DNA of 64,000 bases from Klebsormidium nitens (GCA_000708835.1 DF236955.1:124001-188000), one strand, 5' to 3'; positions 7,649 through 53,964 are shown, counted from the first letter of the stretch. Notes: generated by a model not told the origin, from the sequence alone. Made by a program: numbers and translations.

Positions 7649-9011
7649 TAAGAAACGAAACTGTCTATGGAGCAATTGGGCCGGCCATTAAGAATAGTAT
7701 CCGTTCGGTGACTGAATGGATGGAAAAAAAAGGGTGGAGCAGGGGTCGATCCTTGAGTAGCACCTTGGGGAGAATGCTAGCTCAGGGTAGGAGGCAGGGG
7801 CACTAGGATTGTACATCTGGTCGGGACTATGAGTGAGATCATGTACATTGTACGGTCAGTGTAAAAAGGAAGAGATGGGTTTGAAAGCAGTTAAGGCTAG
7901 AATCGGATGGATGGATCATGAGCATTCTCATTTGACGGTGTGAAGAACTATTCTGGCTAGCCGCACGATCCAGTGTCGAAGGGTCTGATGGTCATTGCTT
8001 CAGCGCAGACACAACCGTCTTACATATACCTAAATTCGGTACGGCAAAAGTCTTGCAAGCTTCCCTGGAGCGTGAGTTTGACGCGCCGGGTACAGTGAAA
8101 CCTCTTAAGAAGACCTATGAAAAGTCTCGTCACCCCCGCCACGAAAGCGATATCCCTGCAGTCAGCCTTTTTCGACGGGCTCGGTCTTCACCTGTGGTAC
8201 GTCAAGAACTTACACTACGAACACGGGGAGCTTCTCGAAGCATAGACATTCAACTCTTGTGACTTATTCTGAACGCGCTAGCGTCGTTCGAGTCCAACCG
8301 TTCTTAGCGCTTGGCTGCCGATAGATCTACTTTTCCGGCTGCCTCCGCGGTCCGAAGTTAACAGGTACTAACTGCGCGGCCGCGCTGCGCATGGGTCGTA
8401 GCATAGGTATATTCAAAGTAACGAGCGCGTGAAGAAAAATGAGATTCGTCATTAAAATTTTAGAACATCATGCTCGAATCAGAAGTGGACATGTGCACAA
8501 ACAGCGATCGAAGGCTTCATGGTGCAGCGCCCAAGCCTTTTAAAGCATACAACAGTAGCTGCAGTTATAAGGCGTCTTAGGCAGGCAAATCCTATATATT
8601 GACATTGCAAGCGTGCACATATAAATTCATGGTTTGCGTAATCAAACCAGCTGAGCTCGACGGATATGTCTTTCTAGCACTTATCAATCGTGACCAAGCA
8701 TTGTGGTTGTCCATACACTCGCACGACAACAGTTGACCAGATGTTTTCATTCGATGAAACCGGCAAAGTGAGCTATGGCCCCTGGTTCATAATCAGAGTA
8801 AAAGTTTTAAATTTACAGCCCAGTGAAAGTCTGCATGATCCTGTACAGCTCATCGGTCCTGATCCCTTTGGCTTACGATATTGTTGAACCGACTGAAGTG
8901 CTCCTATAATTCCAAGCGTACTATCTGGTCTCAGGTACAGGCCGCGAGACCGGAGAACTCGAGACTGTTTCCCTATCTTCACTTTGACTGTAGGCTTTTC
9001 CTTACAATCAT

Positions 9012-11962
9012 CTAGCATCCTCTCTCGTGGACCGTCACCTCCAGAATGGGCAGCTCGTACTCGACTTCGCGCATGGTCACCACGTTGCCGCGCTTCGCTT
9101 CAAACCCTGGGGGCAGCTTCAGGACCAAGAAAACCAGAAGCTTGACTGCCCAATCACGTCTACGCGTCACGACACTGAGCTCGTTTCCACAAAAGCCGAT
9201 AGAGACAGCCGCGTTGGTGGAGAAGTAGTCCGCCCCAGACGTCCTCAGACTCGGGTTCATGCCGTGCTTCATGATGCTCGCGCGGTTGTCCGGAGGCGTT
9301 CCGTGGAAGACGTGCTCGATGACAGAATGAGGGTTGCTCGGAGAGACGCCGCCATTCTCAAGCAGCCCTGCATTGCAGAAACTGATGTGAGCATGGAGGT
9401 AAGGAGCAGAGAGAGTGGGCTCACGTCAACCGAGAGACTGGGATGGTTTGCGGATCTCTGGGATGCTTCGGCTGTATAACAACACACACAACATGTTGAC
9501 CATATTGATTCCCTCAATACCATTGAACCGCTCACACACCACATCTAAAGAATCCGTGACTTATCGATTCCGCAACTTGCCAACGCGGCGACGCGTATCG
9601 CGATTCTCACCTCTCAGGTCCGGCATGTGACGCGCCAGGGTCGCCACGAAGCGCTCGTACAGCGGGTTGCCGCGGCTCAGAAAAGAGTTCGCGCGCACGC
9701 TCGTGACGTCCAAGGTGACGCCCGGCAAGTAGCTCTGAGAACGGACACGGCTCTGTAACACGGGCTCCGCTTTCTCGGGGGCGCGCAGCGACTCCACCAT
9801 CTCGTACAGACGCTGCCAGTCAGTGGATACATCAAAGAGATTCAGTTACTGGCCCTTAAAAGACTTGGTGTTTGTTGAACTGCAAAGTCAGCCACATTTT
9901 GTGAAACGAGCAGAACAGGATCTCGAAGCGGTAAGCGGAAGACACGGAGGCTTTTGTGCCGAGAACGAGCGCGAAAATCGTGCGGGAAGTTTCTGAGTTT
10001 GCTGCGCTCGCTGGTGAGCACAGCCGTGGGGGTCGAAGGTCCTCACGAAGTGTATGACGCGAAGCTTCCGGTTGTGGGCAGAGACACGGAGAATGAGGTA
10101 TAGGGAATTTTACCGCAGATTGAAATGTAGGCAGTTTTACCGAGATTTGCTCTGCTTTACATGTGTCAAAGCTTTGTTGGAGCCACACAAGTCATCTTTC
10201 AACTGCAAGATTGTTTCTGCTCATCTCCATGATTGCAAGGGTTTTACGCGCTAATTGGTTGCTGTCATGGGCACATTCAAAGCAGAGTCCCAGCAAACTC
10301 ACATACCTTTTGCGGCTGCCAAGATTCGGCAATCTTGGCCCGCAAGAAGTGCTGCTCATCAATTTTCGAGGGCTTTCAACACAGCTGGGGAAAAGCGTTT
10401 ACAAGTATCGTTGTGACCCAAAAGAGAGGCGCCCACCTCTTTCCTCTGTGCCATCTCCGCCGCCGCGACTGCGGACGCAACCTCCTGCCCGTCCAGGGGG
10501 CACGCGATGCGGACGTCCGTCTTGACACCGGTGGCGGTGTCGGTCATGGTCATCGAAGCGAAGTCGATTACAGAAGACGTCCACGGACTTTTGAAGTGGC
10601 TGGAAATGACAAAACGAGGATCAGCCTGGACTTATGTAACGCCTTGTTCGAAAGGGACAGAGAAATTGTATCGCTGACGCTTCACTGGATCGTCAGCAGA
10701 TCAAAGCCTTGTAGACCAGCATCCGACAAAGACGAGCCGTTCAATCATCTAGCTTATGCCATTCCAGAAGCTTTGGCCAAGTCAATCTATCGTAGTATTG
10801 CCTGAAGACCAGTGGAGCCTCACTTAAACAATGCGTGCGGACTATAGAAGGAAATTAGTACCGCTTCATCGACAACCACCCGTTGCTGCAAACAGTTGAG
10901 ATCATTACTGTAATACGCGCAGTTGAGGTGGTCAGATTGACTTGCCTTCCGTCACTTTCGAGCAGAACGCAGCTGGTCGATCCCGACCGGGCGGCGTCGA
11001 GGAGGAAGCGCGAGTCGCTCGCGGAGAACTGGTTCCACCCCCCGGTAGACGGGTCCCGGTGCCACACCTGGAGCGGGGGGCGCGGGCCAGAGCTCGAGCT
11101 CGGCGGCAGAGCGAGTGTCTGTCCGTTCTGTAAAGAAACGAGATTGGGATGAGAACGAAATTGAGCTGAGAACGAATCTATGTGAGACCTTCCGAAGCTG
11201 TGCTGAGCTTTAACATATTGTCGGAGTCGTGGGTTTCGTACGGGAAGTCTCGCAGCGCAAAACTGTGTCCCTTTGCGTGCGCTCTTGCGCGTGTTAGCGG
11301 AGAATGGAAGTAGACGCGAGGAGAAAAAGTGAGGCTCGTCACTCAAAGGAGTCAACGCTGATTCATGTTTTGTGTATACCGTCGCGGAGGCACCTTTCAG
11401 CGCTTCCGAAGCGCATTTACACAAACCCGGAGCAACAGCTCACACCCTTCTCGACCTTCGACCATCATGTGACTTAGCTTAGGTTGTTTTCAGCACTCTG
11501 CTCATCAAGCTGATCAAGAAACATATTGGTTCACCGCAGGCCTACAGCCTCGGCCCGCCTCTTCAATCCCCTCTTGTCTGAAAGCCTCGAGAATCACCAT
11601 ACATCTTCAAGTAATTGTTTCGAACGAAGTTAGAAGTCACAGCTTGAAACAACCTCCGCTCCGCCTACCTGGATTGTCGCCGGGGGCCCTCCCGCGGCCG
11701 CGGCCGCCCCAACGATCAGCACCGTCCGCAGGAAGCCACGTGGGCTCCTTTGCTGCATGCCCCTCAGATTGACGGTGTATGTCTCTCCATGCACCGGCTG
11801 GACGCAATTCTGGACCCCATACAGGGTCACTGACGCCAGCCCATTCTGGATGCCCTGCTTGATGACGTCAGCGTGGGCGTTCTGGTAGAGCCGCCACACG
11901 GTGTCGTCCCGCCACCAGACGCCGGGCGTGGTGGGGTCGGGTATCTGCCCGGTGATGCACAT
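9012..11962 (-). CDS. WWE-WWE-PARP-like ADP-ribosyltransferase, paralog A (exons 11962-11669, 11127-10946, 10599-10437, 9812-9611, 9367-9012; 398 aa)
   Basis: 1197 nt in phase. WWE-like GVWWRDDTVWRLY...YTVNLRGMQQRSPRGFLRTV; second WWE-like VWHRDPSTGGWNQF...VIDFASMTMTDTATG; ART core IEHVFHGT...DYFST...LLVFLVL...VEYELP. Intron 2 has a GC donor (aag|gcaagt). An in-frame upstream ATG lies at 12061. Confidence 0.85.
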
Positions 11963-13766
11963 TTTGGGCGACCGGAAATCTGTTGCGCTCTTGCGAAAAT
12001 TGTAACGGGGGCGGGAGAACCAGAAACCGGGAAAGCGTGAGCGCCGTTTGAAGGGGGGCATCGCTGGGAGAAACTGCAAGCTCTAGATCTTTCAGGCAAG
12101 TCCTGCGGCTTAGAGCATGAAGACCTCGTAAGTCGGACGTTTGCCTAGAAGAACCCTGATGCAGGCTCGCATATGAGCATAGTTTCTCTCCGTCAAGTCT
12201 CTCTTCAGCGCGCTTCAGAAGGGACCCCGTAAAGTCCGGCAGCCTGCGTGCCAAGCTTCATCGACCTTTATTCCTTTTGTTGTTTCTTCCAACTCGAAAA
12301 TGCATATTTGGCGCTCGAGTCTATCAGTCTTGATGTACTCTCTAAGTTACATGCCGACACTGCACTGGAAACTTTGTGGGCGATCTCGTCAGCCCACCTT
12401 CACTCTTCTTGTGCATGGCGCTACTTTCACGCCCAGGGGCGATTCGCAGCCACAACAGGCCGGGCTAAAATTCTTCGTCGATCTTGATCCGACCCCGTCA
12501 GAACAAGATCACACTTGCTCACCAGCATGAAATGCGTAACACCAAGCTTGAAACAGAGGGTAAGTCCGTACGAGCGGCTTGTCCAGGAGTTTGACTTCAC
12601 GGACAGCCCGCTGTCTGCACGCTTTTTGCGCCAATGTCGTAACGCCTGAGAATTCGGACGACTTCGCAGGTCCCAAGGCAGCCCGTTCATCATGTTAGTT
12701 TTTCTTTTATACAGCCCGGTTGATGAAATCTGCCCCCTGATAAGAAGCACCTCACATAAGCCGCATCCTCTGCCATCCTGAGGCTGCACCAGAGTTTCAC
12801 ACCGAAAGTCTAACGATTGGACTGAGACTGCGTCATTTTTGCAATGAGCCCTCGAAACAGCCGGGCTTTCTGATTATTCCAGGATGCGAGACAATATATG
12901 TCTCTAGACCGAGCGTCGCGTCCTCATCATTAGTGTACGAGCGACGCTGAAGAAGAAGTAAGCTACTACTTTTTGTACGAAGCACAAGGATGCCTTTGCT
13001 CTGTTTGCCAAAATAAATAATGAGCCACCGTTGAAATGCATGCCAATCGGACTATCGATGCCAGCGAAGGCAAACGCATCGCCTTTTCACCCTGATGATC
13101 AGCTATTCCATCTTACGCCCCTACTTGTACGCAGACGTCGATTGTGCGGAGTTCCGTGCGGAGATTCCGTTGCTTCCGGCGGGCTTCAGACCCGAGTGGC
13201 GGCAACAACATTTCTCAGTTTAAAACATCTTTCTTTGAAGCATGCTTCGGCGGGTGAATCAGTGCGGCATCCATGTCTATCCGATCAGAATTGCAGGCGC
13301 ACGGCCGGTTGTGTCGATCTATTTTAATGCATCCAGAGTTTTGCTCAAGACGACTTGAAAATGCTAGCGAATGCGCAACTTCATGCCAATACCAAGACCA
13401 GTTCTTGCAACGTGCGGTTTATATGTCTGGGCATAGCAGCTTCAAAGTGCGAGAAGTACTGCACGGTTTCTTGCTTCTTAGCGAGGACAAGTGATCAGAC
13501 AATTTTACGCACGACTTCCATCCATCCACTCCGGAGATAAAAGTGGAATCTTTACCCTGAAACGTTCTTTCAAAGATGCAATCACTTCAAAACAATAGAA
13601 GTAGCACCCTGAGCTACAGTATGTCGTCTGATACGTAATAGAAGTTCTGTCTATCAAGGGCCATCAACGTTCGCTCTAAGTGAATTTGATGAAACCATCT
13701 GCTGTTCAGAAGTATCTTTAAAAACATTCCGAACGAGCTCTACCAGATTTCCTTATCCACAAACAC

Positions 13767-16637
13767 CTAATTCTCGTCTCGTTCGCCAGCACTAGGCTTG
13801 CGCACAGTTGCAACGGCTATTGGGAGCTCGTACTCCACCTTTTCCATCAGTACCATCGTTCCGTTCTTTCTGAGGGTCCGCTCAGAGAACCCCGGAGGAA
13901 GCGTAAGCACGAGGAAAACGAGAAGGTTTCCTTCGACATCCATCCCATCCAAAACTTCATCTTCATCCGTGTATCCCAAAGAGAGTTCGGCGTCATAGGC
14001 AAAGAAGTCGTAGCCATATATACGCTTCTTGGGATCCATACCCTCCTTGAGGATGCTTTCCAAGTTCTTGTTGCACGTTCCATGGAAAACGTATTCAATG
14101 GGCGACTCTTTCAACCGCTTCCTCTTGCCAGTACTAGTGCTCTTTCCCAATATCAGCCCTGCGAGGAGAAACGCGCAGTTGCGTTAACGCTGTTGTTTTT
14201 TATTCCGCTGTGACGTCACGTCAAAAGGCCTTACGAATGCAGGCGGCTGTTGTCCGTACCATAGTGTTTTGTCTTCAAAAATTGGTTTCAAAAGGGCTTG
14301 CCATCCTTCATGATCTGTGGCCGCCAGCAGAGTCAACCATTACCGTCTGTTGACTATGTCCAGCTACGGACAGGATTGCCGCGAGTTTTTTACACAATGA
14401 TGCTGCAGCTATCCAGGCAAAAATTTCTTCGAGAGGCCGGAAGACTTGCTCGCGCGTCAAGACTTCTAAAGAATATGCATATCAATCGGCGCAAAGCGTG
14501 AAATACTGGGATCGGCGGGTGAAATCCGGCGAGTCATCAACATACAGCAACATACAGCAACATACAGCCCCGTTTCCAGGATGCAATCTTGTCAGATTAC
14601 ACTCTTACTAAGATCTTTACCTGTGAGATCGTGCATGTGGTGTGCCAGGGAGTCCAAGAAGCGCTGGTAGAGACGGCTCTCGTAGCTCAGGTACGGGTTC
14701 GGCCGCTGCGCGACGAGCTTCCACTCCGAATCACCCCCGATCTCGTTAACGAAGCCCTCTACCTTGTCCGGTTCGCGCAGGGACTTGACGAGTTCGTGAA
14801 GCACCTGCACCGAGGGATCATGAGATCAAATACTCACGGTGCTTGTTACTCCCTTTCAATCTCTACACTTGCTCCCTTTTCCTTTTTCATCTCTATTACT
14901 GTGCTCGCTAACTCCTTTCGCGGTTCTGAATCTCATCAATAAGTTGGTTAGCCCGGCCGAATCTATTTGAGTGACGTCTTCATATCGCTTGCGCTGAGGA
15001 TCAGAATCGGAAGGAACCTTTGAATGCAACGGCTGATGGGTTCTCGAGCACATTCTTTCATCCTGATCAAAGAACGGCTTTTCCTGAAACATCTTTCCGA
15101 GGTAACAGAAACTCCGACGTCCCTGGCTTTGGCTCTCAGTTTCAGTATATTCCCAGGTTTCCGGTTGAAGTACGTACACTCCACGCTTTGATTGGCGCTC
15201 ACCAGCTTCTTTTGCGCGTGGTCTGCTGCCGCGATCGCGGCCGCGATGCCGTCTCCGTCCAGGGGGCAAGCGACTCGGAGCTCGGCCGTTCTTCCAGTGA
15301 CGGTGTCGGTCTTGGTCATGGACTGGAAATCGACCATGGCGAAGCTGCAGTGACGTGTGTCTGACGTCAGCAGGGCTAAATACATACAGCCAAAAGAGCA
15401 GTTTGATATAGATCAGTCAAGACTTCAACCGACGTTCGAGAGCGACTCTTGAGGGCTTTTAAAATGTTGGCATGTCATCGTCCAAAATTCCACCCGGCAA
15501 ATCCGTCCGAATCTTACTTGGCCAGTCTTCCAAAGTCTCAAAAACGTAGTTCAGAGGAGGTGAAAGTGAGGCCATCTCAAGTCTGATTTTGAAATGATCA
15601 TCAATCCGGGGAGATCATCGACAGAAAATCATTATCTGTCCTAGTGAGAGGATTCGGGAGTAAATCCAGTTGCAGAACAACAATCCTCTGAAAGAGAGGT
15701 GCTGCTGACCTTGCAATAAACAGCTGTAATTTTGGTATAAACTTCTGCCAAAGAACCAGATCTCGACTTACCTGCCGTCGCCCTCGTCCAGCAGACACGT
15801 GGGCGCTCCGGTTTTGGCCGCACGCAGGAGAAAGCGGGCCACCAAGTCAGAGACGCGCGTCCACTTGTCGGAGCTCGATCCCCGCTGCCAGATCCGGAGG
15901 AGGGGCGAAAGCACGTTTGCAGAAAGAGCCTGTCCGCCCTGCACAAGAGCGAATACTGCGGGCGTTAAGCGACCTCCGTTCCCGTCTTTGCAAAAGAGTA
16001 TTTCTGAGAAGTGCGGCGAAAGATAGGGCAAGGAAGGCTCTCATAGGGATCAAAAGAAGTGCAGCTTGCGCAAGGAAGGCAGCGCAATCCGAGAGGGTCA
16101 ATTATGCAGCAGCAACACCCACGTTTTCAAACAGAGAACCTTACTGCACTCAAAGAATCATTGAGTTGCCCCAACCAAAGGGAGAAAAGAGAAAACCAGA
16201 AGATGCAATGTGTGCGATCAGTCAGCGGCAACTTCGGAAATCATCCTGACAAACAGACCCGTTCACGGTCTTCGGCCAGATGTTCATGCTCACTTCTAAG
16301 CGGGGATACCAATGAGAGAGGAGGCTGAAATTCCAGCGACTTGGACCTTTGCTACCCTCGGCCACCCTGTCGCCCCCGCCCCGTCCACAACCAGCACCGG
16401 GCGCATGAACCCTCGTGGGCTCTTCTGCTGCATGATTCGCAGATCGACGGTGTACGTTTCTCCAAGCTCCTCTCCATCGACGTCTGACAGGCCCTCCAGA
16501 GTGACCCACGTCAACCCGTTCCGGACGCCCTCCTTGATGACGTCAGCATGCGTGCTCCCGTAGCGGCGCCACTCGTCGTCTTCCCGCCACCAGACACCGG
16601 GCGTCGCGGGGTCGTCGATCTGCCCGGTGATGCACAT
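13767..16637 (-). CDS. WWE-WWE-PARP-like ADP-ribosyltransferase, paralog B (exons 16637-~16341, 15938-15772, 15344-15203, 14804-14621, 14158-13767; about 393 aa)
   Basis: Same 5-exon structure and intron phases as paralog A. MCITGQIDDPATPGVWWREDDEWRRY; ART core IEYVFHGT...YDFFA...LLVFLVLTLPPGF...VEYELP. The exon-1 donor is ambiguous (phase-0 GT options after 16356, 16347 or 16341). Confidence 0.85.
14538..14567 (+). repeat. 10-bp tandem repeat x3 (paralog B intron 4)
   Basis: caacatacag x3. Confidence 0.9.
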
Positions 16638-17792
16638 TTTGGGCACCTGGAATTGCGGCTACGCTGTTCCGGAGGTGTACCGGGGGCGGGAGCAGCGGCC
16701 GGGGAAGCAACGTGGGCGCTCCTCCTTCGAGGGCATTCTTCGAAGAAGATTGCGGGCTTTGATCTGCGGACCAAGCGTACTTTTGAGGAGCGTGAAAGCG
16801 TCGCGATCTGGTAGTTCTTGAGAACCCAAGCTGGCTTCTCTCCTCTTTTCAAAACGAGGCTGTGTTTGAGTGGCTCATCCTGTTCAGCGTGCGAGCTAAG
16901 GTGCCCCGGGTAAGTCTTAGTTCGCGTTTGTCTTCGTTAGCGCCACTAAACGCTGTCTCGCATGGGGGCACCCCTTAGGGCGTGTCCTGCCTCCTCTCTA
17001 GCTGCGCACTGAAGTCAAGCTGAAGATTTTGATAAAAGCAGTCGGAGGTGAAGCTGAATGTTATGTCAGCGGATCTTGTGGGCCCACTTAAATCCTTCAG
17101 CTTGTGCGCGTGCATGGCGTATCCATGAACGGTCACAAAGCACGCCACGTCCTGGGGACTCGATTCTCCTCGTCTTTTGTTAGGCTTAGCTTGACTTGAA
17201 GTGTTTCGATTGGTCATGATTGATTGACAAAGCCAAGCCGAGTTGTCACGAGAAGTTTGAATCAATCGAGCGGCCGGGCTCTCAACTGGAATTGATGACC
17301 CTGACGATCCGCTATACGCGGGGATGCGCTGGTGTTACTTTGCATGAAGCCTCTGACAATGCTGGAGGCCCAGAGGCAGCCTGTTCAAAATGTCTGCAAA
17401 TTACACTCGCCGCCCCAGGGTAGCCCCTTGGAAGAGACGTCAAATCAAACGAAAGAGCCTCACGTAGCCTGAACTACCTTTATCTCACGCAGCGGTGGGA
17501 CGGGAGGGAGATTACCGTAGTGTTGTAATTTATCAGCCACGAGGACTGAGCTGTATCTGAGCATCAGAATAGGAAAAAAGGACCTGCGACGTGACAAAGT
17601 TGTATCTTACAACTTCTAATGCATCAGGATCGATCGAGAAACCCGCCACTTATAGCGGCCCGAACAAAATCATTTCATTTCGGCAGCTTTTTCCGTTCCA
17701 AAGCGAACAGTCCGTTCACCATCAGAGATACTTCCTTGAATACAGAAGGCGCTCTCAAAAGCAAGGAGCGCATTCCGTCCCCGGCTGCCCCG

Positions 17793-20700
17793 ATGTGCAT
17801 CACCGGGCAGATCCCCGACCCCACCACGCCCGGGGTCTGGTGGCGGGACGACCGCAAATGGCGCCGGTACGAAAGCACGGAGACTGACGTCATCAAAGAG
17901 GGCCTCCGTAACTCCCAGAAATGGGTGACTCTCGAAGGGGTGAATAACCTCCTCTTTGGCTCCCGTGTAACGTACACCGTCGATCTGCGGATCATGCAGC
18001 AGAAGAGCCCAGGTGGCTTCATGCGCCCGGTTCTGATCGTGGACGGGGCGGGGGCCGAAGGGGGTCCGGGAGAAGTTCAGGTACGTGCGCTGTGAAAGGA
18101 TCGATCAAGCTCCTTCTCGGAAGCGGATTCTGGTGACCGAAAGAAAGCCTAAGTCGTGAAAATCTCCATACGCAAGGAACTATAATGGAAGGCATCTTGC
18201 TGTGATTATCGTTGCTTATGAATGTTCTGGAAAAGGTTCAATGCGTGGTCAAGTGACGTAAGTTTGGAACGAATCTAGTGGAGCCCTTGAACGCAGTTGC
18301 GCCCATCTGAAAAAGAGAGTTCCTGTAAAGGGTTTCGCTCGAAGTGCCAAGGGGGCTGAAAAATGTAGCAAAGGCGGCCGCCCACAGCGTCTTCCAGAAT
18401 AATTGTGTTGTATCCAGTTGGTCACCCCAAAAAATCTGTACGTGGCTTTTATTGTGCTGTTTGACTTGCCCAAAAGTGGAAGACTCCTTGAATTATCTGT
18501 TCCCACAGCAAAGCGGCAAGCATTCTCTGAGAAGAAAAACAATCTCCAATCCGGTTGTCGTGTTTCGTATGCGTGTGCTCGTTTCTCTGAGCGCTAATTT
18601 GACAGAATTCTAAACCCAAACTTAGTTTAATTAACCAGTTCGCGACCCCTTCCATGTACGGAGTTTTCTGAAAATAGTGACGAGATTTCATCACGACTTT
18701 CTGCAGAATGGGCAAGCGCTGGCTGCAAACGAGTGCCCGCCGTTCCTCCGCATCTGGCAGCGAGAGTCCGGATCGAGCCGATGGAACCTGATCCCCAACA
18801 TTGCGGCGCGCTTTCTGCTGCGCGTTACAAAGACTGGAGCGTCCAGATGCCTTCTGGATGAGGGGAACGGCAGGCAAGTATATATGATGCACAGGGCAGC
18901 ACCTTCTGCCTTTCCGGTGGAAAAATAATGTTTTGAGAACCATCCAGTTGGGCAGTGTGTGGTACGTGAGCTGGCAGAAACTCTATGCTAAACGAAAGCG
19001 ACGATGCACCTGCAACTTCATCAATTTGTCAAATAGGCAGGCGCTGAGAGGACTGGCTGTCACAAAAACTTCTCCGGCAGTATCACGCTAAGGCCTTCCT
19101 CAAACACTTTGCCTTTCAGAGCTTTTGCCTATTCACTCCAACAAGTTAATTTCTTCGAATGTGCTCTCACGCCAGGCTGACGTCATTGCATCTTCTGCAT
19201 GGTCGAGTTGCCCTCCATGACCAAGACCGACACCGTCACCGGCAGGACGTCCGAGATCCGCATCGCGTGCCCGCTGGACGCGGCCGGCATCGCGGCCGCG
19301 ATCGCGAAAGCAGAGCATGCCCAGAAGAAATTGGTGAGGGAAAAGGCGACCTTGCACTTGTAGCGGCAATTTTTGCGTTTGCCTATTTGTGCGCGCGCCT
19401 GAAGGAGTTGTCTGGGGTTGAGCTTTTCTAGTGTCTGCTCTAATTTCAAGGTTGTGAAATCGCTGTCAGCAATTGACTAGCCCTTGAAATACACGCGAGT
19501 ATGTTACTCGCTGACTCAGAAACGTTATGGGTTTTATGATCAGCAGTCTTCTTATGAGCAGTCTTCTTTGAAGAGTCTCCTTATGAGCAGTCTCCTGCGT
19601 TTCGAGTATGGCAAACCCGTTGAGGTACAACCAGGGTTTCGGTTAAGATATCAACACATCAAGCAATATTAGATCCACCCACTCACTCAGCTGAAATAGA
19701 CAAACCGGAGCATAGAAACTTATGGGGATTCCTCGATGTACTACCCATGTTTTTCAATCGTAATTTAGGATTACGAGCTTTCCAAGACCTCGAAAACCAG
19801 TTCCGCTCGATGGGGTTTCAACGGTAGATCCGCCTTCGCTCAATCAGGTGCTTCACGATCTGGTGGAGTCTCTGCGCGCTCCTGAGCATATCGAGGACCT
19901 CGTGAAAGGAGATGGAGGAAACGGTTTGGAGCTGGTGGGTCAGCGTCCTAATCCGTACCTGGACCGCGAGAGCGACCAGTACCAGCGCTTTCTGGACACG
20001 CTGGCGCAGCACATGCACGATCTCAAAGGTATGTATGTAGCAAGTTTACAAGTTTCTGCGGGTTTTATTTGCGAAGCCGATCAGTATTGGATTCAGCCTT
20101 TGATTCCTATATGCGGAGGGCACTGATGCAATTCCAAGTGGGCCCAACTCAACGCATATCAACTCATGGTGAAGATTGAGCTCGTGATCAGATGCTGGGC
20201 ACTTCGCTCAAAGAGAAGCGACAATCTGTGCTATCCATCCGGATAGAATGTCAATTCTACGAAGGTGCATCAAACCAATTCAATGGCATCGACCTCATCT
20301 CCATCTTGTTCTGAGGTAGTCGCACAACCTTTGCTTTACACGGGCTTACCAGTTCGTCAATGCTGACCCTTAGCGAAGGCCTTGAGCGACAGTTATGAGA
20401 ACTCAAATTTCACCACGAAAGCCCGCGAGATGTGAATGGGCGCTTGGAGACGTACACAGCTTCCCATGCATCTCAAAAGCTCGAATTGACCCGTAGCGCC
20501 GGGGCCGCAAGTTCTTCCAAATGCGGAGACGACTTCGTCTTTGTAATGGTACTTCCGTTGCCTGCAGAGATGCTGGTCAACGAGAGTGGGCAGAAAAGGA
20601 GGCGGGCGGAACCGCCCATCGAGCACGTCTTCCACGGGACCCGCCCCGAGAACCTCGACAGCATCGTGCGGGACGGAATGGACCCCCGCCTCCGCAGAGC

Positions 20701-20938
20701 AAAGCGCGACTACTTTGCCACAAAACCGGCCTACTCTCTGGACTTCACCAATCCTTACCTCGGCTCCTATTTCGCCCGCCACTTCCCCGGTCCCGACGGC
20801 CCCCAGAAGCTCCTCGTGTTTCTGGTGCTCACGCTCCCCGTGGGGTTCCTTCGCAAGGAGGGCAACGACGCCGTCGTGGTCATGGACAAGGTCGAGTACG
20901 AGCTGCCCATCTTCGAAGTGACGGTGCGCTACAAGTGA
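17793..20938 (+). CDS. WWE-WWE-PARP-like ADP-ribosyltransferase, paralog C (exons 17793-18080, 18707-18873, 19192-19333, 19848-20028, 20568-20938; 382 aa), possibly splice-defective
   Basis: Exons 2 and 3 have the same lengths as in paralog B (167 and 142 nt). ART core IEHVFHGT...DYFAT...VEYELP is intact. Intron 2 has a GC donor and its homologous acceptor reads AT, not AG (ttgcat|c at 19190-19191). Confidence 0.75.
19534..19596 (+). repeat. Degenerate ~15-bp tandem repeat x4 (paralog C intron 3)
   Basis: ttatga(tca)gcagtcttc / ttatgagcagtcttc / tttgaagagtctcc / ttatgagcagtctcc. Confidence 0.75.
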
Positions 20939-22245
20939 TGTAAATGGATAGAAGGCTATAATAGGGTGTCGTAAGTGAAAATAGTGGCTTTAAGTAAAAT
21001 GGGGACGGAGAGGGGCCGTATCTGTTCCTCCAGCCAACTGGGTCTTTGAAACCGTGAGCTTCCAGAACCAAACTTGTGAGCTTGAGCTGATTGACGTACA
21101 ACTTGAATACAGTGACATCGGCTGGGGAACATTGGTTTATAGATAGAATATTCAGGGGTTCCAAGCGACCGTGTAAATACCAGACATTTCGTTCACCGAA
21201 AGCCGACTCAGTGGGTGAGCGTGACCAGTTCATGAGCGGTAGGCTTGCGGCTCTGCGAGTGCCAGATTAGTTAAGATAGTCAAAGACTGTCCAACTAGAA
21301 ACCTTAGAATAGCGTACATAGATGTCGATACGCCTTTTCTTCGCGCTTCGCCGAACTGTAGCTCCCCTTTTATACGGAGAAAATTGTGAGACATCTGCGG
21401 AAGTGCAATCGTACTGTATCCTCTTATTGGCTTAGGATTCGACACGTCTTCACTGTTTAATGAACCGGAAGAGAATCGTTTGCATATCTCAGAAAGCCTG
21501 CTTTTTAGGACCGCTGCATGCCCACTAAATGGATGCTCAATCCTTTCCAAAAGAATGACGCGTCAATAGCTAGATGCATGAATGCTCCTCGGCACATGCA
21601 TACGAACCCGGTTGCGGTTCAAAATTCTGGCATGCTTTCGACAAACACCTCATGCAGATCTCGAAATATGTCCGAGGGTTGTGCGGCCTGTCCAAATCAA
21701 CCATTTACATGACTACTCGATCCAACTATTTGGCCTCCCAGGAAGGAGTCAAGAATTTGGGTCTTGATATGGCGCATCGCGGTAAGCTAGTTGGCAAACA
21801 CGCCACACTTCACATATCATGCTCCGAGTCTGGCAGTGGCCGCGGCCCCGCGCTCAGTTACGTGAGGCAGGTGATTACCTTATATCGCATCGTTAATTGT
21901 TTACCGTTCATGATTCGGCATACACGCTAGATTCGACTAAAGCTTACGTACATGCATGCAACAACCTGGCTGTGGCGAGCCTTATGACCCGCACGGTGGT
22001 GCGAAGTACTGACGAAAGTTTCACGCGCATCGAACACTGAACTCAACCTCCACCGGATTACGGGCGTCACAACACCTGGTCGGAAATGATGATCAGTGAG
22101 AAATGTACCCAATTGTGCGAGCATGGGTACCATACAACTATGGGTTTCGCTTGAGTCGGATTCTCATACGTTTAAAACTATGTTGCGGGCTCAAGTAATT
22201 GCTCAGCTTCCTCAGGGGGATCTCGCATAGATGGTCTGATGAACT

Positions 22246-43048: not shown

Positions 43049-46000
43049 ATGGCTCAGATCAGGATGCACCTACAAGATCAACTCCGCTGCACAGGTGTCA
43101 GCGCTTGGTGGGATGCAACATGTGGGCCTGGTGCTGTGCCCAGCCAGAACCTGGCACGTCAACGTTGTCCCACTCTATTCACGCGAAAGCCTTTGTTGAA
43201 AGCTCAGGTGTCACACAATGGCATGCGCACACCTGCGCCGTCCTGTCCAAAATACAGGTCAAGTGGTCGCTTCCTGAAAGGATTGCCCCTCTCTGGGCGG
43301 TGCTTGGGGAACCTTCCTAGAAAGAAAAGTGCTAAAAGGACGAACACAACAGTCAGAGCAGCTCTTGCGGAGAGGCCGCCGAAACTTGAACGCAAGAGCG
43401 CAGAAGATGGGAAGGTGCCTTACAACTGGCAGACTGAATGGTATCCCGTGTACATTACGGAGCAGATGCCGAAGGATCGGCCGATGGCGTTCACCCTGTT
43501 TGACACCCCCCTGGTCCTCTTCTATGATGGCACAGGAAAGCTGAGCTGTGTGGAAGATAGGTGCCCCCACAGAGCAGCGAAGCTGTCAGAAGGGCAGGTG
43601 AGAGAATCAATTGCCGCAGGCTTGGAGTCCGTTCGTATGTTGCCCTGTCACCCATATTCTGTTATGCGGGAGAGGGATTGATCGCCGCGGGCTTTAGGTC
43701 CTTTTGATTGTTACCTTGTTTCTCTTATGCTCTTGTGATCATTAAAGAAAGCGTTCGGGGGTCTCAAGGAAGCTTTTGTAGCAAATCAGATACCTCAGAC
43801 GGCATTTGTACGGATTGCTTATCTTTGCACCGTGCCTTTCATAGGCCTAACTGCTTGAACGTTTCTTACCCTGATCTCACTCGAACGTGACAAACCAAGG
43901 AGAACTTCCTGCTTTATCATGGGTGCCCGACCCTCTAGTTTAGCAGAAGAAAGGTTCACTTCTGAAGCTCACATTGGAGGACGTTGACAATTTGTGCTTT
44001 TTGAAGAACCAGGTTGGATAACTCTTCCCCCTCATTGATCCAGATCATTGACGGGAAACTGGAGTGCCTCTACCATGGGTGGCAATTTGAGGGGGATGGC
44101 AGTTGTTCAAAGATCCCTCAGCTCACAGACGGGGCTGCCATCCCTCGGGCTGCCTGCGTGAGGACTTACACAGTCAGAGACCGGCAAGGTGATCAATCAA
44201 CTCAGGATTCAATTGTACTGCTTCGAATGCCTCTGTACTTATGTCAGAAGTAAAGGTGCTGCCCCTGGTGTCCAGGGGTCATGTGAAAAGTCAAGGGGAG
44301 GGGCGCTTGCAACTCAAATATGTCTGCTTCCAATCAGCAAGAAGCTGCTTCGTTAATTTATTGCCCGCTTGTCTTTTGTCGTCTGTCTATGCTTACTGTT
44401 TGTCTTGATCCAACTTGTGGGGATCTCCACTAACTGTAGTCAATTGTTATCTGCTTTAACGTGCTATGGCTTTTCAAGCTATACTTATATGACATGAACA
44501 CTTTTCATCTGGAGTCTTGTTGCTCTCGAAGTTGGGTACTGCTTGTTCTTTCAAAACCAAAAACTAATAATGTTCGTTCTTTCTCTAAAGCCCAACCAAT
44601 TGTCTCGCTAACGCCTGTGTTTCATCCTCCAACCAGGGGTGGTCTGGGTTTGGATGGGAAAGGAGTCAGAGGCGGACGAGTCAAAGCTGCCCTACTGGAA
44701 CGATCTCGACATGGAGGGCTTCAGAGTTGACTCGCACATCCATGACCTACCCTACGACAGCGGGATTCTGCTTGAAAACCTCATGGACCCCGCACACATC
44801 CCCATCTCTCACGACAAGTTAGCGCACCCCCAACCATATCCTCTCGTTTTCAATTCAAGCTTGGTGTGATAGTTTGCCGCAGCGTGTTTGCAAAAACGGC
44901 AAAAATGCAAGCACTTTAGGCATGTGTTTCTGCAGCTTAACAGCCGCGATACGGATTGTGATGTTTGTCTTTGTGTTGCAAACGCAACGCTTTTGTCTAA
45001 CATAATACATTTCGTAGCTGCAAAAGTTGCCAACACGACAGAAGCAATACATACTTTCAGGGATTTTATCATGAGTTGAGAGCCTTGTGTTTTCGCAATT
45101 AGAAACGACCCTGTTTCAAGGGATTGCTCTGCCTTGTGCGTTGTACTCACTCGGATTCCATTCTTGCAGGACGGACCCCAATGGCCGCCGAGAGGACGCG
45201 CAAGCGCTTTGGTTCGACGTGACAGAGCGGACCGATCGTGGATTTGCCGGCGGGTGGGTTTCACGGTTTCTTGTTGCTTAAGCGCCGAGTTTGGACGTCT
45301 TTTCAATTCATGCTCTTCCGCTGGGTCTTACACCACCGAGCCTTGACAAAAGACGAACTCGCCTTATTCCAGAAGGTACCCTGCTTAGAGTGGGCCACGA
45401 TGGTTGACACTGTCCAAGAGCGAGATTTTTCCAGTCTGCTTGACACTGGCGACTTACGTTTCGAGATACAAGCCGGATGCTTTGACTAGTTCACTCTTAT
45501 GTCTGCGGCGGATTCACGGACAGACCGGCGCTTCTTGAGGCCTTGCCCAGTCAAGCACGAATGCAGGTAGCATCAGCTCAAGGACTTCAGTGAACAGGCG
45601 TCTTTCAATTTCTGCTCGGAATGGGACCTGGAAGGCGGGGGTTCGTATCTCCAACGTCGCCTTGCGAATCTCCAGCGTGTTCGGGTCTTCCTTACCTCGT
45701 TGGCGCTTTTGGTACGAAATGGATTTGCGCCGAAGCGCCAAAGCATCGAGAGCCACACTGCAGCATTCCATCATTCGCGCGGACGATCGTTCAAGCTTAT
45801 TGCTCTGCGGCGAACCTTCCGGAGTCCATAACAATCCGTTCCGTTCCGTTTCGCTTTGCAGATTTGGGATGACCAAGCCCCGGGCGGACGGCACGGTGCC
45901 CGGGTTTACGGGCCGCTTCGTGGCCCCCTGCGTGTTCAACAGCCGGCGCGAGTGGGTGGATAAGAAAGGCAACAAGGTCGTCTCGCTCGCGCTCATTCTG

Positions 46001-50275: not shown

Positions 50276-53200
50276 CTAGGCTAAGCGGATTCCTTGCGGC
50301 GCTCCCGCGGCTGCCGCCGCCTTGTTGATTGCCTTTTGCGCCTCCGCTTTGTACAGAGCCTTCATGTCTCGCTTCACCACCCGCGACTCACGCCGCTGCT
50401 CCTTAACGGCAGCCTGCACGGCAACCGACCAAAGATTATCAATATGTATGGCTCTGATAAACATGATGTCCGCGCTTCAAGCGACTAGATCAACTGATGC
50501 TTTTCAAGGCTTGTGTAGTGCTGGACCTCGTCAACAGAAAGGTTAATGATATTGGCAACTAGTCGACGAGAAGCTGACAATCAGCAGATTCCCAATGGCT
50601 GAGAGAAAAGATCGTCAACCAAAGTCTCTCGTAGGCCTGCTGGTCGTTGTGAGACAAACATCAGGAATCAATTCAGAGGTGTTGGCATCATTTCGTCTCG
50701 GTAAGAAACTAGTTCCAGTGACCATGGTCGAAGCGATCGAGCGAAAAGAGTTTCAGTGACCAGGGTCGAAGCGATGATGACTTCAAACCATTAACTACTG
50801 ACGAACTACTCCTGAAAAAAAGCGGAACGGTTACCAAGGCGAAACCGGGGTTAAGAAAGCCTGTGCGGCTCACCTTGCGCGCCTTCTTCTCCTCCTTCCC
50901 TTCTCCCGCTCTCGGCCCCGCCACCTTCTGACTCGGCCCCCTCTTCTCATCTTCTTCATTCTCCTTCCCGGAGGGCCTTTCCGGCAGCCCCTCCAGCCCC
51001 CCCCGGCGCGGCAGATACTCGATCGGCAGGCCCTCCTTCCCGCCCAACCTAATCAGCCCGGGAAGATTCTCCTCTCTCTGACTACCCCGTTCCGAGCCCA
51101 GACTTTTGAACTTGTTCGGGGGGGCCCCGATGCGTGCGGGGTGGTTGTCGAGGTTCGAGTATGTCGACACGATGGTATCACAGTCCCAGTGCTCCCGCTC
51201 GTCTTCTTCCTCGACCCAGATCACCTCTTTCTCTTCGCGCAGCTCCCCCAGGACGTCCGCTTCTTCGTCCGCACCCCCGTCCGAAACCTCGTCCAAACCC
51301 CTGCCCTTTCCAGAGGTTTTATTAGTCCTGGCTTCGACAACCTCCGCTTCCCTTCCGCTCGTGCTAGCGGCCTCAAGCAAACCGGCCTCCGCTGACGGAG
51401 AGCCGTCTGCCCTCCGGTCGCTCGACATCGTCTCCTTCTCGAGTCCAACTGCCCCGTTCTTGACATCCCCAGACAGCACATTGCTTTTTCTGGACAGCCC
51501 ACCGGTTTCTTCGGTCGGCGCGGTCTCCGTTCGCTGCTTGCCCCCCTTTTCGACTTCCGCAAGCGTGTGGTACTCGTCGGGATGCACATCGTGGTCTTCC
51601 AGGAAGCTGTCGAGCACCGAGTCGAACTGGGAGATGTCCGCATGGCCGCGTGCGTCCACGTCCTCTTCGTCGGAGTCGTCGTCCAGATCGTACTCCCGCA
51701 CTGCTAACTGCAGTTGCATTCGTGAGCGATCAGAAGCTACTCGGGAGAAATTCGAACTTGAGTGGACTCAAAGAAAGATCCGATTGATTTGGTACCTTCC
51801 AAATCTAGGATATGGTGCGCCCTTTCTATCTGGCAGGCAATGGAGAAACGAGATGGGACAGGAAAGAAGGATCGAAGGGTCTCTGGCTCGATCAGACTGA
51901 CAAACCCGTGTCTCCTCTACCCCGCAGAAGCCTGCCACTTCTGATTTGATGATGAGAAAACGGCATTTAGAAGGGTGATCCTTTCAGCGGACCATTTTTG
52001 CCAGAATGCTTTTGTCTTGGGTGCTTCACTACAACGTTCGGTAAGAGGCACCAGATTGAATGTTCCCAGAAACCTGCTCTGAGAAAGGCCTATCCTTACT
52101 GTAGATACCAGTGGGCAGGCAAGAATCCGAAGGAGGTGGGCAAAATCACAGGGGTGAAAGTCAGGCCACAGGGGGTGAGTCATGCTTTGCAATGAGCAAG
52201 GTGTGCAAGTCACTTGAGATCGCAACAGGTTTTCAAGCCGACTTAGTTCTACAGTACAACACAAAAACCTCCCCCAAGTGTCCATTCTGGGAGGCGCAAC
52301 ACGCAATTTCAGGCATGGCCAGAAAGCTGAGCAAGCAGCCAAACTAGAGGGAGCAAAGAAGAGTCATGATTCGGAGAGGTCATCAAAAGCAAGCTGTACT
52401 ACGTGCACATATGGTTCGTAAGGGAGGTCCATAACTGACATCGTTGCTCTGGTACCACAATAAAAGGGGCATCATGTGCCATGAAACTCCAGCATTACGC
52501 AATAAAGCCAGGCCAGAATCAAAGGCGCACCACCCACTCACGTTTTCAAACTGCTCGTCCAGCAGCCGCACCGGACGGTCCCGGTTCCTTACGTCCGACG
52601 CAATGCTGGACGCCGCGAAACCCCTCCCCTTCATCGCCGCTGCATCATCTTCTTCTCCCTCCTCCTCCTCACTCCACTCCTCATACTCCTCGATTTCTGC
52701 CACCTCGAAACCTTTCCCTCCCGTGCTCGACCCGAGCCACTTTTGAACCGCACCACCATTGCCAAGAGCCCCCCTTGGCGCGATTCTGAATCCCTCAGCC
52801 GCGCCGTTTTCTTCCTCCGCCCCCCTGTTTGCCTCTATCACGAAATCATCCTCAAGCTCCAGCTCTTCGTCCCCCCCGTCCTCAGACCCCGACTCCTCCA
52901 GAAGCTTCAGAATGTCCGGGTCCAGAACACTCGCGCCTACTTTCTGAATCTCTTTCGCACCCCCGGCGGCCTCCGCCTCCGCCAGGATCTCGTCTTCTTC
53001 CGCGGGCTTCACGCGCACCGTCTTTGCATTATACGCACGCACGTCCGCTCGCAGGTTCCTCTCTGGAGCGACCGCGATCGCACCGACGCCCCCGCCACGA
53101 AGCTCCCGCAGATGCTTCGTGTAATCATACCCGTCGTCCGGAAAGCCCATCTCGAGGACCTCTCTTCTCACGTGCTCTGGTAACGGCTCCCGAGGGCCAG

Positions 53201-53450
53201 CCCACAAAGGGTGTGCAGGACCAAAGCCCCGGAAGTCTTTGAGCCCGTCTTCCAAGGCGAATTCGCTCCCCCCCTCGAACTGGGACTCGGTGCCATCAAA
53301 GCCCGGGGCCGCCTCATCCCGCCCATCGGAGCGGACGAAGATGCGCTCAGGAGCGGAATCGTCTCCGGCTGCCGCATCGGAGCTGTCACGAAAGACTAGG
53401 CTGAAGGTGGCAGCTTTCTTCTTGTCGATGAAGCTCTTCTTCTTCCCCAT
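50276..53450 (-). CDS. LTV1: LTV1 40S ribosome biogenesis factor (exons 53450-52542, 51707-50874, 50413-50276; 626 aa)
   Basis: 1881 nt in phase. MGKKKSFIDKKKAATFSLVFRD, FPDDGYDYTKHLR, LLDEQFE, WDCDTIVSTYSNLDNHP, and a C-terminal KEEKKARKAAVKEQRRESRVVKRDMK. Confidence 0.92.
50713..50775 (+). repeat. Short direct repeat, period 38 (LTV1 intron 2)
   Basis: cagtgacca(t/g)ggtcgaagcgat x2. Confidence 0.8.
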
Positions 53451-53964
53451 TGTTTCTGGCGGCAACTTGTAGGCAACGCTAACACCAGAATGAAAAGTTA
53501 CAATGTTGAAGCTACCACACTCGCTGTGCGCCCACAAGAGCTAACTTCGTCTTGCACCACCCGATTTCGGCCAAGCTCCCTATCCAGGACTAGGTAGTAG
53601 AAATTCTGGTGGTATGTATCCAGATTGAATTTGTGGAGGAAGGCTGCGTGTTGAGGTGAAAGCGGCAGCAGGCAGCTTGAAGTTTGGTAAGCAAGTCGTC
53701 GAACCGAATCGGCAGAACTACGGTTTGTTTCCAACTTCCCGAGTTCGATCTCGAAGCCGATAACGTGTGCGGAGCTGTTCAACACCTCCCCTCCCCTCCT
53801 GCTTCGTCCTCTTTCCAACTCTTTGAAGAAGACGACACGGGTTAAAGAGGTAGCGCCCCCCGCTACCCACCTTGCACCGCTAGACGTGTGCTTGGGCCCC
53901 GTCTTCGACCGTTTACAGACTTTTATCACACGTCAGCTTCTGTTTGGATTAGCAGTCTGCAGCC
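53451..53964. promoter_or_regulatory. Probable bidirectional promoter between LTV1 and RPLP0
   Basis: The two ATGs diverge only 514 bp apart. One site-II-like TGGGCC lies at 53893-53898. Confidence 0.5.

Follow-up and report, generated by a model that had tools for sequence, protein, structure and literature searches.

Surveys place the WWE-bearing mono-ADP-ribosylating PARPs (PARP7, PARP11, PARP12, PARP13 and PARP14) in animals only, and plants are listed with PARP1/2/3-type enzymes and the largely inactive RCD1/SRO proteins (PMC2964712). In the classification of Citarelli et al. (2010), the WWE-bearing clade 3, of which clade 3E includes PARP11, PARP12 and PARP13, has no plant members, and the plant proteins combining WWE with PARP form the RCD1/SRO clade (PMC2964712). 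Here we describe a cluster of three paralogous five-exon genes in a 64,000-nucleotide stretch of DNA from Klebsormidium nitens (GCA_000708835.1 DF236955.1:124001-188000, hereafter the window, whose numbering is used throughout): gene A at 9012-11962 (minus strand), gene B at 13767-16637 (minus strand) and gene C at 17793-20938 (plus strand). Our reading, to which we give a probability of about 0.6, is that A, B and C belong to a streptophyte family whose proteins join an ADP-ribose reader to a compact PARP-type mono-ADP-ribosyltransferase. With their PARP11/12-like layout and their NAD+ pocket kept, such proteins would give the green lineage a candidate writer of mono-ADP-ribosylation that has its own reader, in a family found in algal relatives of land plants and in conifers. 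Literature searches for WWE together with PARP or ADP-ribosyltransferase in Klebsormidium or charophytes found no paper, and those for SRO or RCD1 with Klebsormidium returned only unrelated ones.

The raw sequence and the open reading frame (ORF) list of 8950-21100 contain fifteen conserved coding blocks in three sets of five; two of the sets are on the minus strand and the third is on the plus strand. Splice sites were anchored by motif and the blocks were assembled into spliced coding sequences, giving open frames of 398 codons for A (11962 down to 9012), 393 codons for B (16637 down to 13767) and 382 codons for C (in its ancestral frame). All three assemblies share the phase series 0,2,0,1 for their introns, in agreement with a first-pass annotation of the sequence, which had proposed three (-,-,+) paralogs with five exons and identical phases. 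The motifs listed there are likewise all found in the translated exons (WW-R-D/E-D, Y-T-V-D/N-L-x-x-M-Q-Q, RPNPYL...YQRF, FHGT, D-Y/F-F, LLVFLVL and VEYELP). Introns are 243-626 bases long, and their splice sites are GT-AG except for intron 2 of A and C, which is GC-AG with the donor AG/GCAAGT (the slash marks the exon border); the intron 2 donor of B is GT. When the three proteins were used as tblastn queries, exactly three copies were found in the window, and both this count and the tree described below bear out the proposed local tandem expansion. The copies share 49-63% amino-acid identity in pairwise comparisons, with about one synonymous substitution per site (dS ~1) and a nonsynonymous to synonymous ratio (dN/dS) of 0.29-0.42, which identifies A, B and C as old duplicates under purifying selection. 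In the public database, A is KFL_000060290, B is KFL_000060300, and C corresponds to KFL_000060310 and KFL_000060320 (two halves); all are annotated as hypothetical proteins.

Each protein is arranged as a predicted unstructured N-terminus beginning with Met-Cys, a first WWE domain (WWE1), a second WWE domain (WWE2), two long helices and a PARP catalytic fold. WWE1 starts about 14 residues after the start codon, and the proteins end 10-20 residues past the last PARP strand. Exon 1 carries the Met-Cys start and WWE1 in all three genes: 11669..11962 (-) in A, with the donor CAG/GTAGGC (27.1 bits, E 5.7e-6), 16341..16637 (-) in B, whose public model is P0003 (29.8 bits, E 7.8e-7), and 17793..18080 (+) in C, where it is part of KFL_000060310 (28.8 bits, E 1.6e-6). 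These scores of 27.1-29.8 bits all pass the Pfam PF02825 cut-off of 21.1. In eight aligned WWE1 sequences W17, Y62, Q71 and R79 are invariant, and the profile built from them finds the WWE domains of Deltex, TRIP12, DTX1 and HUWE1 with E values of 5e-9 to 2e-4. In the WWE complexes of TRIP12, HUWE1 and RNF146, Tyr, Gln and Arg residues bind phosphate and adenine, and a Trp stacks (PMC11269756). Tyr62, Gln71 and Arg79 of WWE1 align to Tyr809, the conserved Gln and Arg827 of TRIP12, respectively, and the Trp of the WW-R-D-D motif aligns to the stacking Trp.

WWE2 is split over exons 2 and 3. Its first half is encoded by exon 2 (A, 10946..11127, minus strand, with the GC donor GCAAGT in phase 2; B, 15772..15938, minus strand, with the donor AG/GTAAGT in phase 2; C, 18707..18873, plus strand, ending at a GC donor), and its second half by exon 3 together with the start of the helical linker (A, 10437..10599, minus strand; B, 15203..15344, minus strand, with the acceptor CTGCAG). 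Pfam matches to WWE2 are below threshold, at 19.8 bits for A (residues 128-250 of the public model P0002, E 0.001) and 15.7 bits for B; the WWE2 of the Mesotaenium relative reaches 25.1 bits, above the cut-off. WWE1 and WWE2 are homologous to each other by hhalign (96.9%, E 1.4e-10). The full-length AlphaFold model of B has a predicted local distance difference test (pLDDT) score of 84. In this model, residues 103-181, which span WWE2, match the solved WWE domains of TRIP12 (Z 11.6), HUWE1 (Z 11.0, root-mean-square deviation 1.7, 69/69 residues) and RNF146 (Z 10.3), and the longer segment 11-177 superposes on the WWE tandems of DTX1 (Z 10.5) and Deltex (Z 9.1). The proposal of two WWE domains per protein is thus upheld by Pfam for WWE1, and by hhalign and the fold matches to TRIP12 and HUWE1 (Z 11-11.6) for WWE2. 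At the Tyr, Gln and Arg positions, the WWE2 of K. nitens has Ala, Lys and Ala, so that three of the four ligand residues are lost; therefore, WWE2 is probably a structural partner and not a second binding site. The Mesotaenium protein (P0019), by comparison, has Tyr, Gln and Arg at the ligand positions of both its WWE domains. Comparison of the two WWE2 sequences suggests a shift from two reading sites to one.

Exon 4 encodes the linker helices and the first strand and helix of the PARP fold (A, 9611..9812, minus strand, aligning to the N-terminal part of PARP catalytic domains; B, 14621..14804, minus strand, with RPNPYL...YQRF; C, 19848..20028, plus strand, part of KFL_000060320), and exon 5 encodes the PARP core and the stop codon (A, 9012..9367, minus strand, with FHGT, DYF, LLVFLVL, VVTM and ELP; B, 13767..14158, minus strand; C, 20568..20938, plus strand, where the core is still open and conserved). 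With Pfam PF00644, B and C score 13.8-13.9 bits around FHGT, short of the cut-off of 26.7, and no PARP match was found in the last 86 codons of A. Relatives do pass this cut-off, including the Mesotaenium protein (27.3 bits), P0041 (48.3 bits) and P0013 (53.2 bits). An exhaustive hidden Markov model (HMM) search of a representative protein library with the three exon-5 peptides retrieved 266 protein clusters at E <=0.001, many of them passing the PARP cut-off. A profile of 102 of these relatives matches the solved chains of PARP13 (2e-8), PARP12 (3.5e-8), PARP10 and PARP15, with E values of 2e-8 to 5e-7 (2e-8 to 6e-8 for the first three), and the match spans the N-P-x-x...L-Y-x-R-F helix to the MLVFAVL strand.

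The AlphaFold model of B residues 205-388 has a pLDDT of 85.7 and a predicted template modelling score of 0.83. Residues 4-177 of this model match PARP10 (Z 14.4), PARP15 (Z 14.1), PARP13 (Z 14.0) and tankyrase (Z 13.8), and the model also matches RCD1 (Z 13.2), the TASOR pseudo-PARP (Z 12.9) and the PARP domain of wheat SRO1 (Z 12.0). Tpt1 (Z 5.8) and diphtheria toxin come next in the ranking, with Z <6. Foldseek with the B model agrees on the PARP fold (E 1e-7), and in the ESM Atlas the clusters that come closest in whole-protein shape are those of PARP11 and PARP12. Profile, Foldseek and fold comparison (Z ~14) therefore agree with the PARP-type ADP-ribosyltransferase fold that had been proposed from motifs; structure prediction had been named beforehand as a check, and both the ADP-ribosyltransferase and the WWE folds are predicted. 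The catalytic fold is about 165 residues long, including the N-terminal strand-helix unit (RPNPYL...YQRF), and owes its compactness to the short segment, only ~16 residues, that connects the LLVFLVL strand with the last hairpin. It offers a naturally minimal PARP for structural studies and enzymology.

The residues of the predicted active site are largely those expected of a mono-ADP-ribosylating enzyme. The catalytic His (His80 of the model, His284 of B) is invariant. The position of the triad Tyr is occupied by Tyr in A and C and by Phe in B (Phe310), and in the 102 relatives by Tyr in 92, Trp in six, Phe in three and Ser in one. The nicotinamide pocket retains the Ser and Tyr of its S-x-x-Y-C motif. 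Across the 102 relatives, His-Gly-Thr shows little or no variation, and >90% have Tyr/Phe-Phe, Ser and Tyr. The position of the triad Glu corresponds to model residue 156, the first residue of the penultimate strand, a mapping that was made from alignment ranges and strand lengths with no residue-level superposition and may be off by one; the alignment ends to PARP1 (E988), PARP10 (I987) and tankyrase-1 (E1291) agree on it. At residue 156, B has Met (Met360) and both A and C have Val; 86 of the 102 relatives have Ile, Val or Met there, and no acidic residue or Gln lies within one position of this site in A, B or C. The His-Tyr-Glu triad is thus incomplete, with His in all three proteins, Tyr in A and C only, and an aliphatic residue or Met in place of Glu. 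The pattern His-Tyr-aliphatic is that of the mono-ADP-ribosylating PARPs of clade 3 (PMC2964712), and with Met or Val at the catalytic Glu position, polymerase activity is unlikely. The Glu of VEYELP, which the motif list had implied as catalytic, was considered and rejected: it lies in a hairpin turn, and the Glu position is eight residues upstream, at the Met or Val. We note that (Q/E)-L-P is invariant at this last hairpin turn.

From the retained residues and the predicted folds, we infer a reader and mono-ADP-ribosyl writer mechanism. WWE1 would dock the protein on ADP-ribosylated partners, modified with either single units or polymers. The PARP domain would use NAD+ to attach single ADP-ribose units to itself or to targets close by, comparable to PARP10, PARP11 and PARP12, and WWE2 would act as the structural partner of WWE1, as one WWE domain of the pair does in ZAP (PARP13). 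Several points weigh against this reading. The Pfam PARP score of 13.9 bits falls short of the required 26.7, the triad Tyr is replaced by Phe in B, and the mapping of the triad carries the one-residue uncertainty given above. PARP13, RCD1 and TASOR illustrate that a fold of this type is often non-catalytic, and in structure they score nearly as high (Z 12.9-14.0); the shortened acceptor-side loops could abolish or change target binding. Moreover, the only RNA contig of gene B within the mapped 15001-21000 is intronic.

Much of this would also fit a PARP-like domain that is a non-catalytic pseudo-enzyme, as in RCD1/SRO, PARP13/ZAP and TASOR, with the proteins serving only as ADP-ribose-binding adaptors or scaffolds. 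The absent catalytic Glu, the change from Tyr to Phe in B, the truncated acceptor-side region, the fold matches to RCD1, TASOR and PARP13, and the sub-threshold Pfam score all point in this direction. However, known pseudo-PARPs have lost the NAD+ pocket, with RCD1 and PARP13 lacking the His, whereas the pocket pattern (His-Gly-Thr, Tyr/Phe-Phe, Ser, Tyr) is kept in >90% of the relatives of A, B and C. The closest solved chains by sequence also include the active mono-transferases PARP10, PARP12 and PARP15, and we therefore regard a pseudo-enzyme as unlikely, while giving it appreciable weight. A different target rather than a lost activity is also conceivable, in which the compact domain would modify nucleic-acid ends or another non-protein acceptor, as in Tpt1/KptA, instead of proteins. 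PARP10, PARP11 and PARP15 are reported to modify phosphorylated RNA or DNA ends, and in the K. nitens proteins the loops that shape protein-acceptor binding in PARPs are absent. Weak Pfam Tpt1/KptA matches occur around His-Gly-Thr (E 0.017-0.076), and profile matches to RNA 2'-phosphotransferase chains reach E 5e-7 over 40 residues. These matches span only ~35-40 residues, however, and the fold match to Tpt1 (Z 5.8) is far below that to PARPs (Z 14). As the N-terminal strand-helix unit (RPNPYL...YQRF) is moreover PARP-specific, we consider such an activity very improbable.

The cluster might alternatively, as suggested at first pass, be a fast-turnover antiviral or defence array, functionally parallel to animal PARP12 and ZAP, in view of the tandem duplication, the decay of one copy (C) and the overall shape nearest to PARP11 and PARP12. 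Yet no CCCH zinc finger or other nucleic-acid sensor is found in the proteins, whole-gene dN/dS values of 0.29-0.42 do not point to positive selection, and the neighbours are housekeeping genes. The duplications are also old (dS ~1), with a separate ortholog of each copy in related algae. We consider a defence array improbable. Taken together, a reader joined to a compact mono-ADP-ribosyltransferase is the reading we prefer for A, B and C.

Relatives with both WWE and the compact core were found in Mesotaenium endlicherianum, with two WWE domains, in Closterium sp. and Netrium digitus, with one WWE domain each, and in Chara braunii, where Pfam finds one WWE domain and a second, diverged WWE-like segment can be aligned. 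The proteins of Cryptomeria and Taxus are shorter and consist of linker and core. We note that a word-indexed protein search, whether run with the full protein or with a profile of six sequences, yielded no more than the K. nitens copies and a few fragments, and that the distant relatives come from the exhaustive HMM search. No flowering-plant member was found among the few matches whose source was looked up. In a maximum-likelihood tree, which is rough (core only, 107 columns, bootstrap not settled), a streptophyte group (96/85) stands apart from a protist group. A and B each pair with their own ortholog from other samples (100/97), C lies in the same subgroup, and the conifer sequences are sister to the Klebsormidium subgroup (98/88). 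On a 9.6-kb contig from another sample (L002), two family genes stand head to head, in the same arrangement as B and C. As judged from these relatives and the tree, the cluster is a Klebsormidium-lineage expansion of an old streptophyte family, and not a lineage-specific invention. The first-pass annotation had taken the family to be lineage-specific, which does not hold given the relatives in Chara, Mesotaenium, Closterium, Netrium, Cryptomeria and Taxus, and the core in 266 clusters, mostly protist or metagenomic.

Two further arrangements of the core were observed. At another K. nitens locus, the 1042-residue protein P0011 (KFL_001610050) contains two compact PARP cores (His-Gly-Thr at 151 and 936), with several repeats of WWE-like and linker modules between them that Pfam does not recognise. 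In protist and metagenome proteins (P0013, P0041, P0073, P0080, P0101 and others), the compact core is joined to UBA, RanBP2-type zinc-finger-like and acidic motifs, and the acidic (V/I)-(I/V)-D-L-T motifs are reminiscent of SUMO-interaction motifs. This protist and metagenome group appears to be undescribed.

The N-terminus of the family is also conserved. A Met-Cys-(Ile/Leu) start is invariant in eight aligned WWE-bearing members from five genera, and conservation begins exactly at the Met. The Met-Cys sites lie at 11960-11962 (A), 16635-16637 (B) and 17793-17795 (C), at 6023 and 4878 of the contig L002, and in the proteins P0019, P0023, P0053 and P0083. A Met-Cys start is certain in all five WWE-bearing relatives and in four of the six Klebsormidium-type genes examined. 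In B and three related loci, no in-frame Met precedes Met-Cys, or its ATG is the first to follow a stop (which in B lies 7 codons before it); in-frame ATGs do precede Met-Cys in A (33 codons earlier) and in C (at 17619). In the model of B, residues 1-13 are coil, and the mean pLDDT is 66 over residues 1-10. Proteins starting with Met-Cys are substrates of plant cysteine oxidases (PCOs). The PCO of K. nitens is a proven oxygen-sensitive N-terminal cysteine dioxygenase, whose natural substrates are stated to be unknown (PMC9585510). The conserved start makes these proteins concrete candidates for substrates of algal cysteine oxidases. That Met-Cys turns them into substrates of the PCO and Arg N-degron pathway, with oxygen or nitric oxide controlling the stability of the reader-writer, is a speculative and rather improbable extension; if true, hypoxia sensing and ADP-ribosylation would have been linked since ancient times, before the ERF-VII transcription factors arose.

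Transcripts were assessed in public RNA data. Six public runs with the same species label contain parts of the gene C stretch, and contigs of four of them were mapped on 15001-21000. The RNA contigs skip 19334-19847 and 20029-20567, both GT..AG, exactly at the predicted exon borders of C (19333 joined to 19848 and 20028 joined to 20568, in two runs). These runs therefore contain spliced RNA and gene C is transcribed, which answers the question of transcription raised in the first-pass annotation. One further RNA contig joins 18873 to 19208 (joint 18871/18873 to 19206/19208, GC..AG after an allowed 2-base shift), so that three splice junctions of C are supported and its GC donor is confirmed. 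Another RNA contig, at 17546-17791, lies just upstream of exon 1 of C.

The same data reveal a broken splice site in C. At the intron-2 acceptor, B reads cactgcag followed by cttcgccatggtcga, and C reads cattgcat followed by cttctgcatggtcga; CAG has become CAT at 19189..19191 (+), that is AG has become AT, leaving TTGCAT at the ancestral site. Exon 3 of C as spliced (19208..19333, +) begins at a cryptic acceptor 16 bases downstream. From this acceptor the message is out of frame, and a stop follows four codons on (...G-N-G-S-C-P-P-stop). This frameshift explains why the public annotation splits C into two genes. Relative to A, dN is 0.42 for C and 0.46 for B, and the downstream exons of C are still open. 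As C has evolved no faster than B, the break is recent, and in this strain C is a recent pseudogene or a truncated reader (WWE1 and half of WWE2). An in-frame rescue of C, by a GT donor 4 bases downstream and the same cryptic acceptor (net loss of 4 codons), was considered and rejected, as the junction is spanned by a single RNA contig, in which the GC donor is used and the frame is lost. A minor in-frame isoform may exist, since contigs drop rare variants. The earlier description of three genes thus stands for A and B, whose frames are open and which look intact, and falls short for C, which is broken at splicing by the CAT acceptor and the frameshift. Two RNA contigs are wholly intronic, at 18904-19170 (intron 2 of C) and 15991-16153 (intron 1 of B). 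Retained introns, antisense RNA or carried-over DNA might account for them, as might an internal start site, which would fit the public 228-residue model KFL_000060320.

Our gene models differ from the public ones in several places. The public model of A (P0002) starts 33 codons upstream at the in-frame ATG and uses a GT donor for intron 2, skipping 14 codons at the end of exon 2. These 14 codons are kept as coding in L001, a syntenic ortholog from another Klebsormidium-like sample. We prefer the GC-AG model of A because the 14 codons are conserved in L001 and because the homologous GC donor of C is seen in RNA (donor region of A, 10940-10953; donor of C, 18874-18879). In the public model of B, exon 1 ends 15 bases (5 codons) earlier, at 16356, a difference that is immaterial for the domains because it falls inside a disordered linker (pLDDT <50, residues 88-105). 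Only the last 86 codons of A exon 5 appear in the ORF list, owing to the lack of an upstream start codon and not to a broken frame. Intron 4 of B contains a short tandem repeat of three copies of gctgtatgtt (14535-14570, -), which is probably insignificant. Elsewhere in the window, the flanking coding blocks at 43049-43681, 52383-53537, 54600-55151 and 60293-61573 match the Rieske [2Fe-2S], LTV1, ribosomal L10/P0 and U-box families, respectively. These are ordinary housekeeping neighbours, and no functional link between the cluster and its neighbour genes was seen.

Among described systems, the animal proteins PARP11, PARP12 and PARP13 (ZAP) are the closest counterparts. In them, too, a C-terminal PARP fold is immediately preceded by one or two WWE domains; they have an aliphatic residue in place of the triad Glu, and provide the best sequence and fold matches among solved structures as well as the nearest whole-protein shapes. 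In ZAP, one WWE domain of the pair is reported to have a degenerate ligand site (PMC9720839), and in K. nitens the domain with such a site is WWE2. Unlike PARP12 and PARP13, the K. nitens proteins lack CCCH zinc fingers before the WWE pair; unlike all three, they have a catalytic domain ~25-30 residues shorter and a conserved Met-Cys N-terminus. Their lineage is streptophyte, and the likeness is one of sequence, fold and layout rather than of orthology placed in a joint tree. The ubiquitin ligases Deltex/DTX1, TRIP12, HUWE1 and RNF146 share the reader, giving the best matches to WWE1 in sequence and to WWE2 or the pair in fold (Z 9-11.6), with Trp, Tyr, Gln and Arg kept in WWE1, whereas the effector of the K. 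nitens proteins is a PARP fold. The compact protist proteins of the 266 clusters share the core (NP...LY.RF, FHGT, GEYF, S..YC, MLVFAVL, VVV.K and (Q/E)LP), but have no WWE domain, carry other N-terminal regions and lie on a branch separate from the streptophyte group (96/85).

The RCD1/SRO proteins resemble A, B and C as plant-lineage proteins in which WWE is followed by a PARP fold (RCD1, Z 13.2; wheat SRO1, Z 12.0). In contrast to them, the K. nitens proteins have two WWE domains instead of one and no RST domain; Pfam scans of A, B and C found neither RST nor a zinc finger, as had been noted at first pass. The triad, lost in RCD1, is retained in the K. nitens proteins at the His and Tyr positions. 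The 60 top-scoring sequence matches to the family profile include PARP10, PARP12, PARP13 and PARP15 but not RCD1; by this measure, A, B and C are closer in sequence to these four PARPs than to RCD1. The view that the architecture is unlike canonical plant PARPs and SROs thus holds for sequence, which is nearer to PARP10/11/12/13/15, and less so for fold, in which RCD1 is only ~1 Z unit lower. On the combined evidence of sequence and models, we would file A, B and C as a putative new variant among the WWE-PARP mono-transferases.

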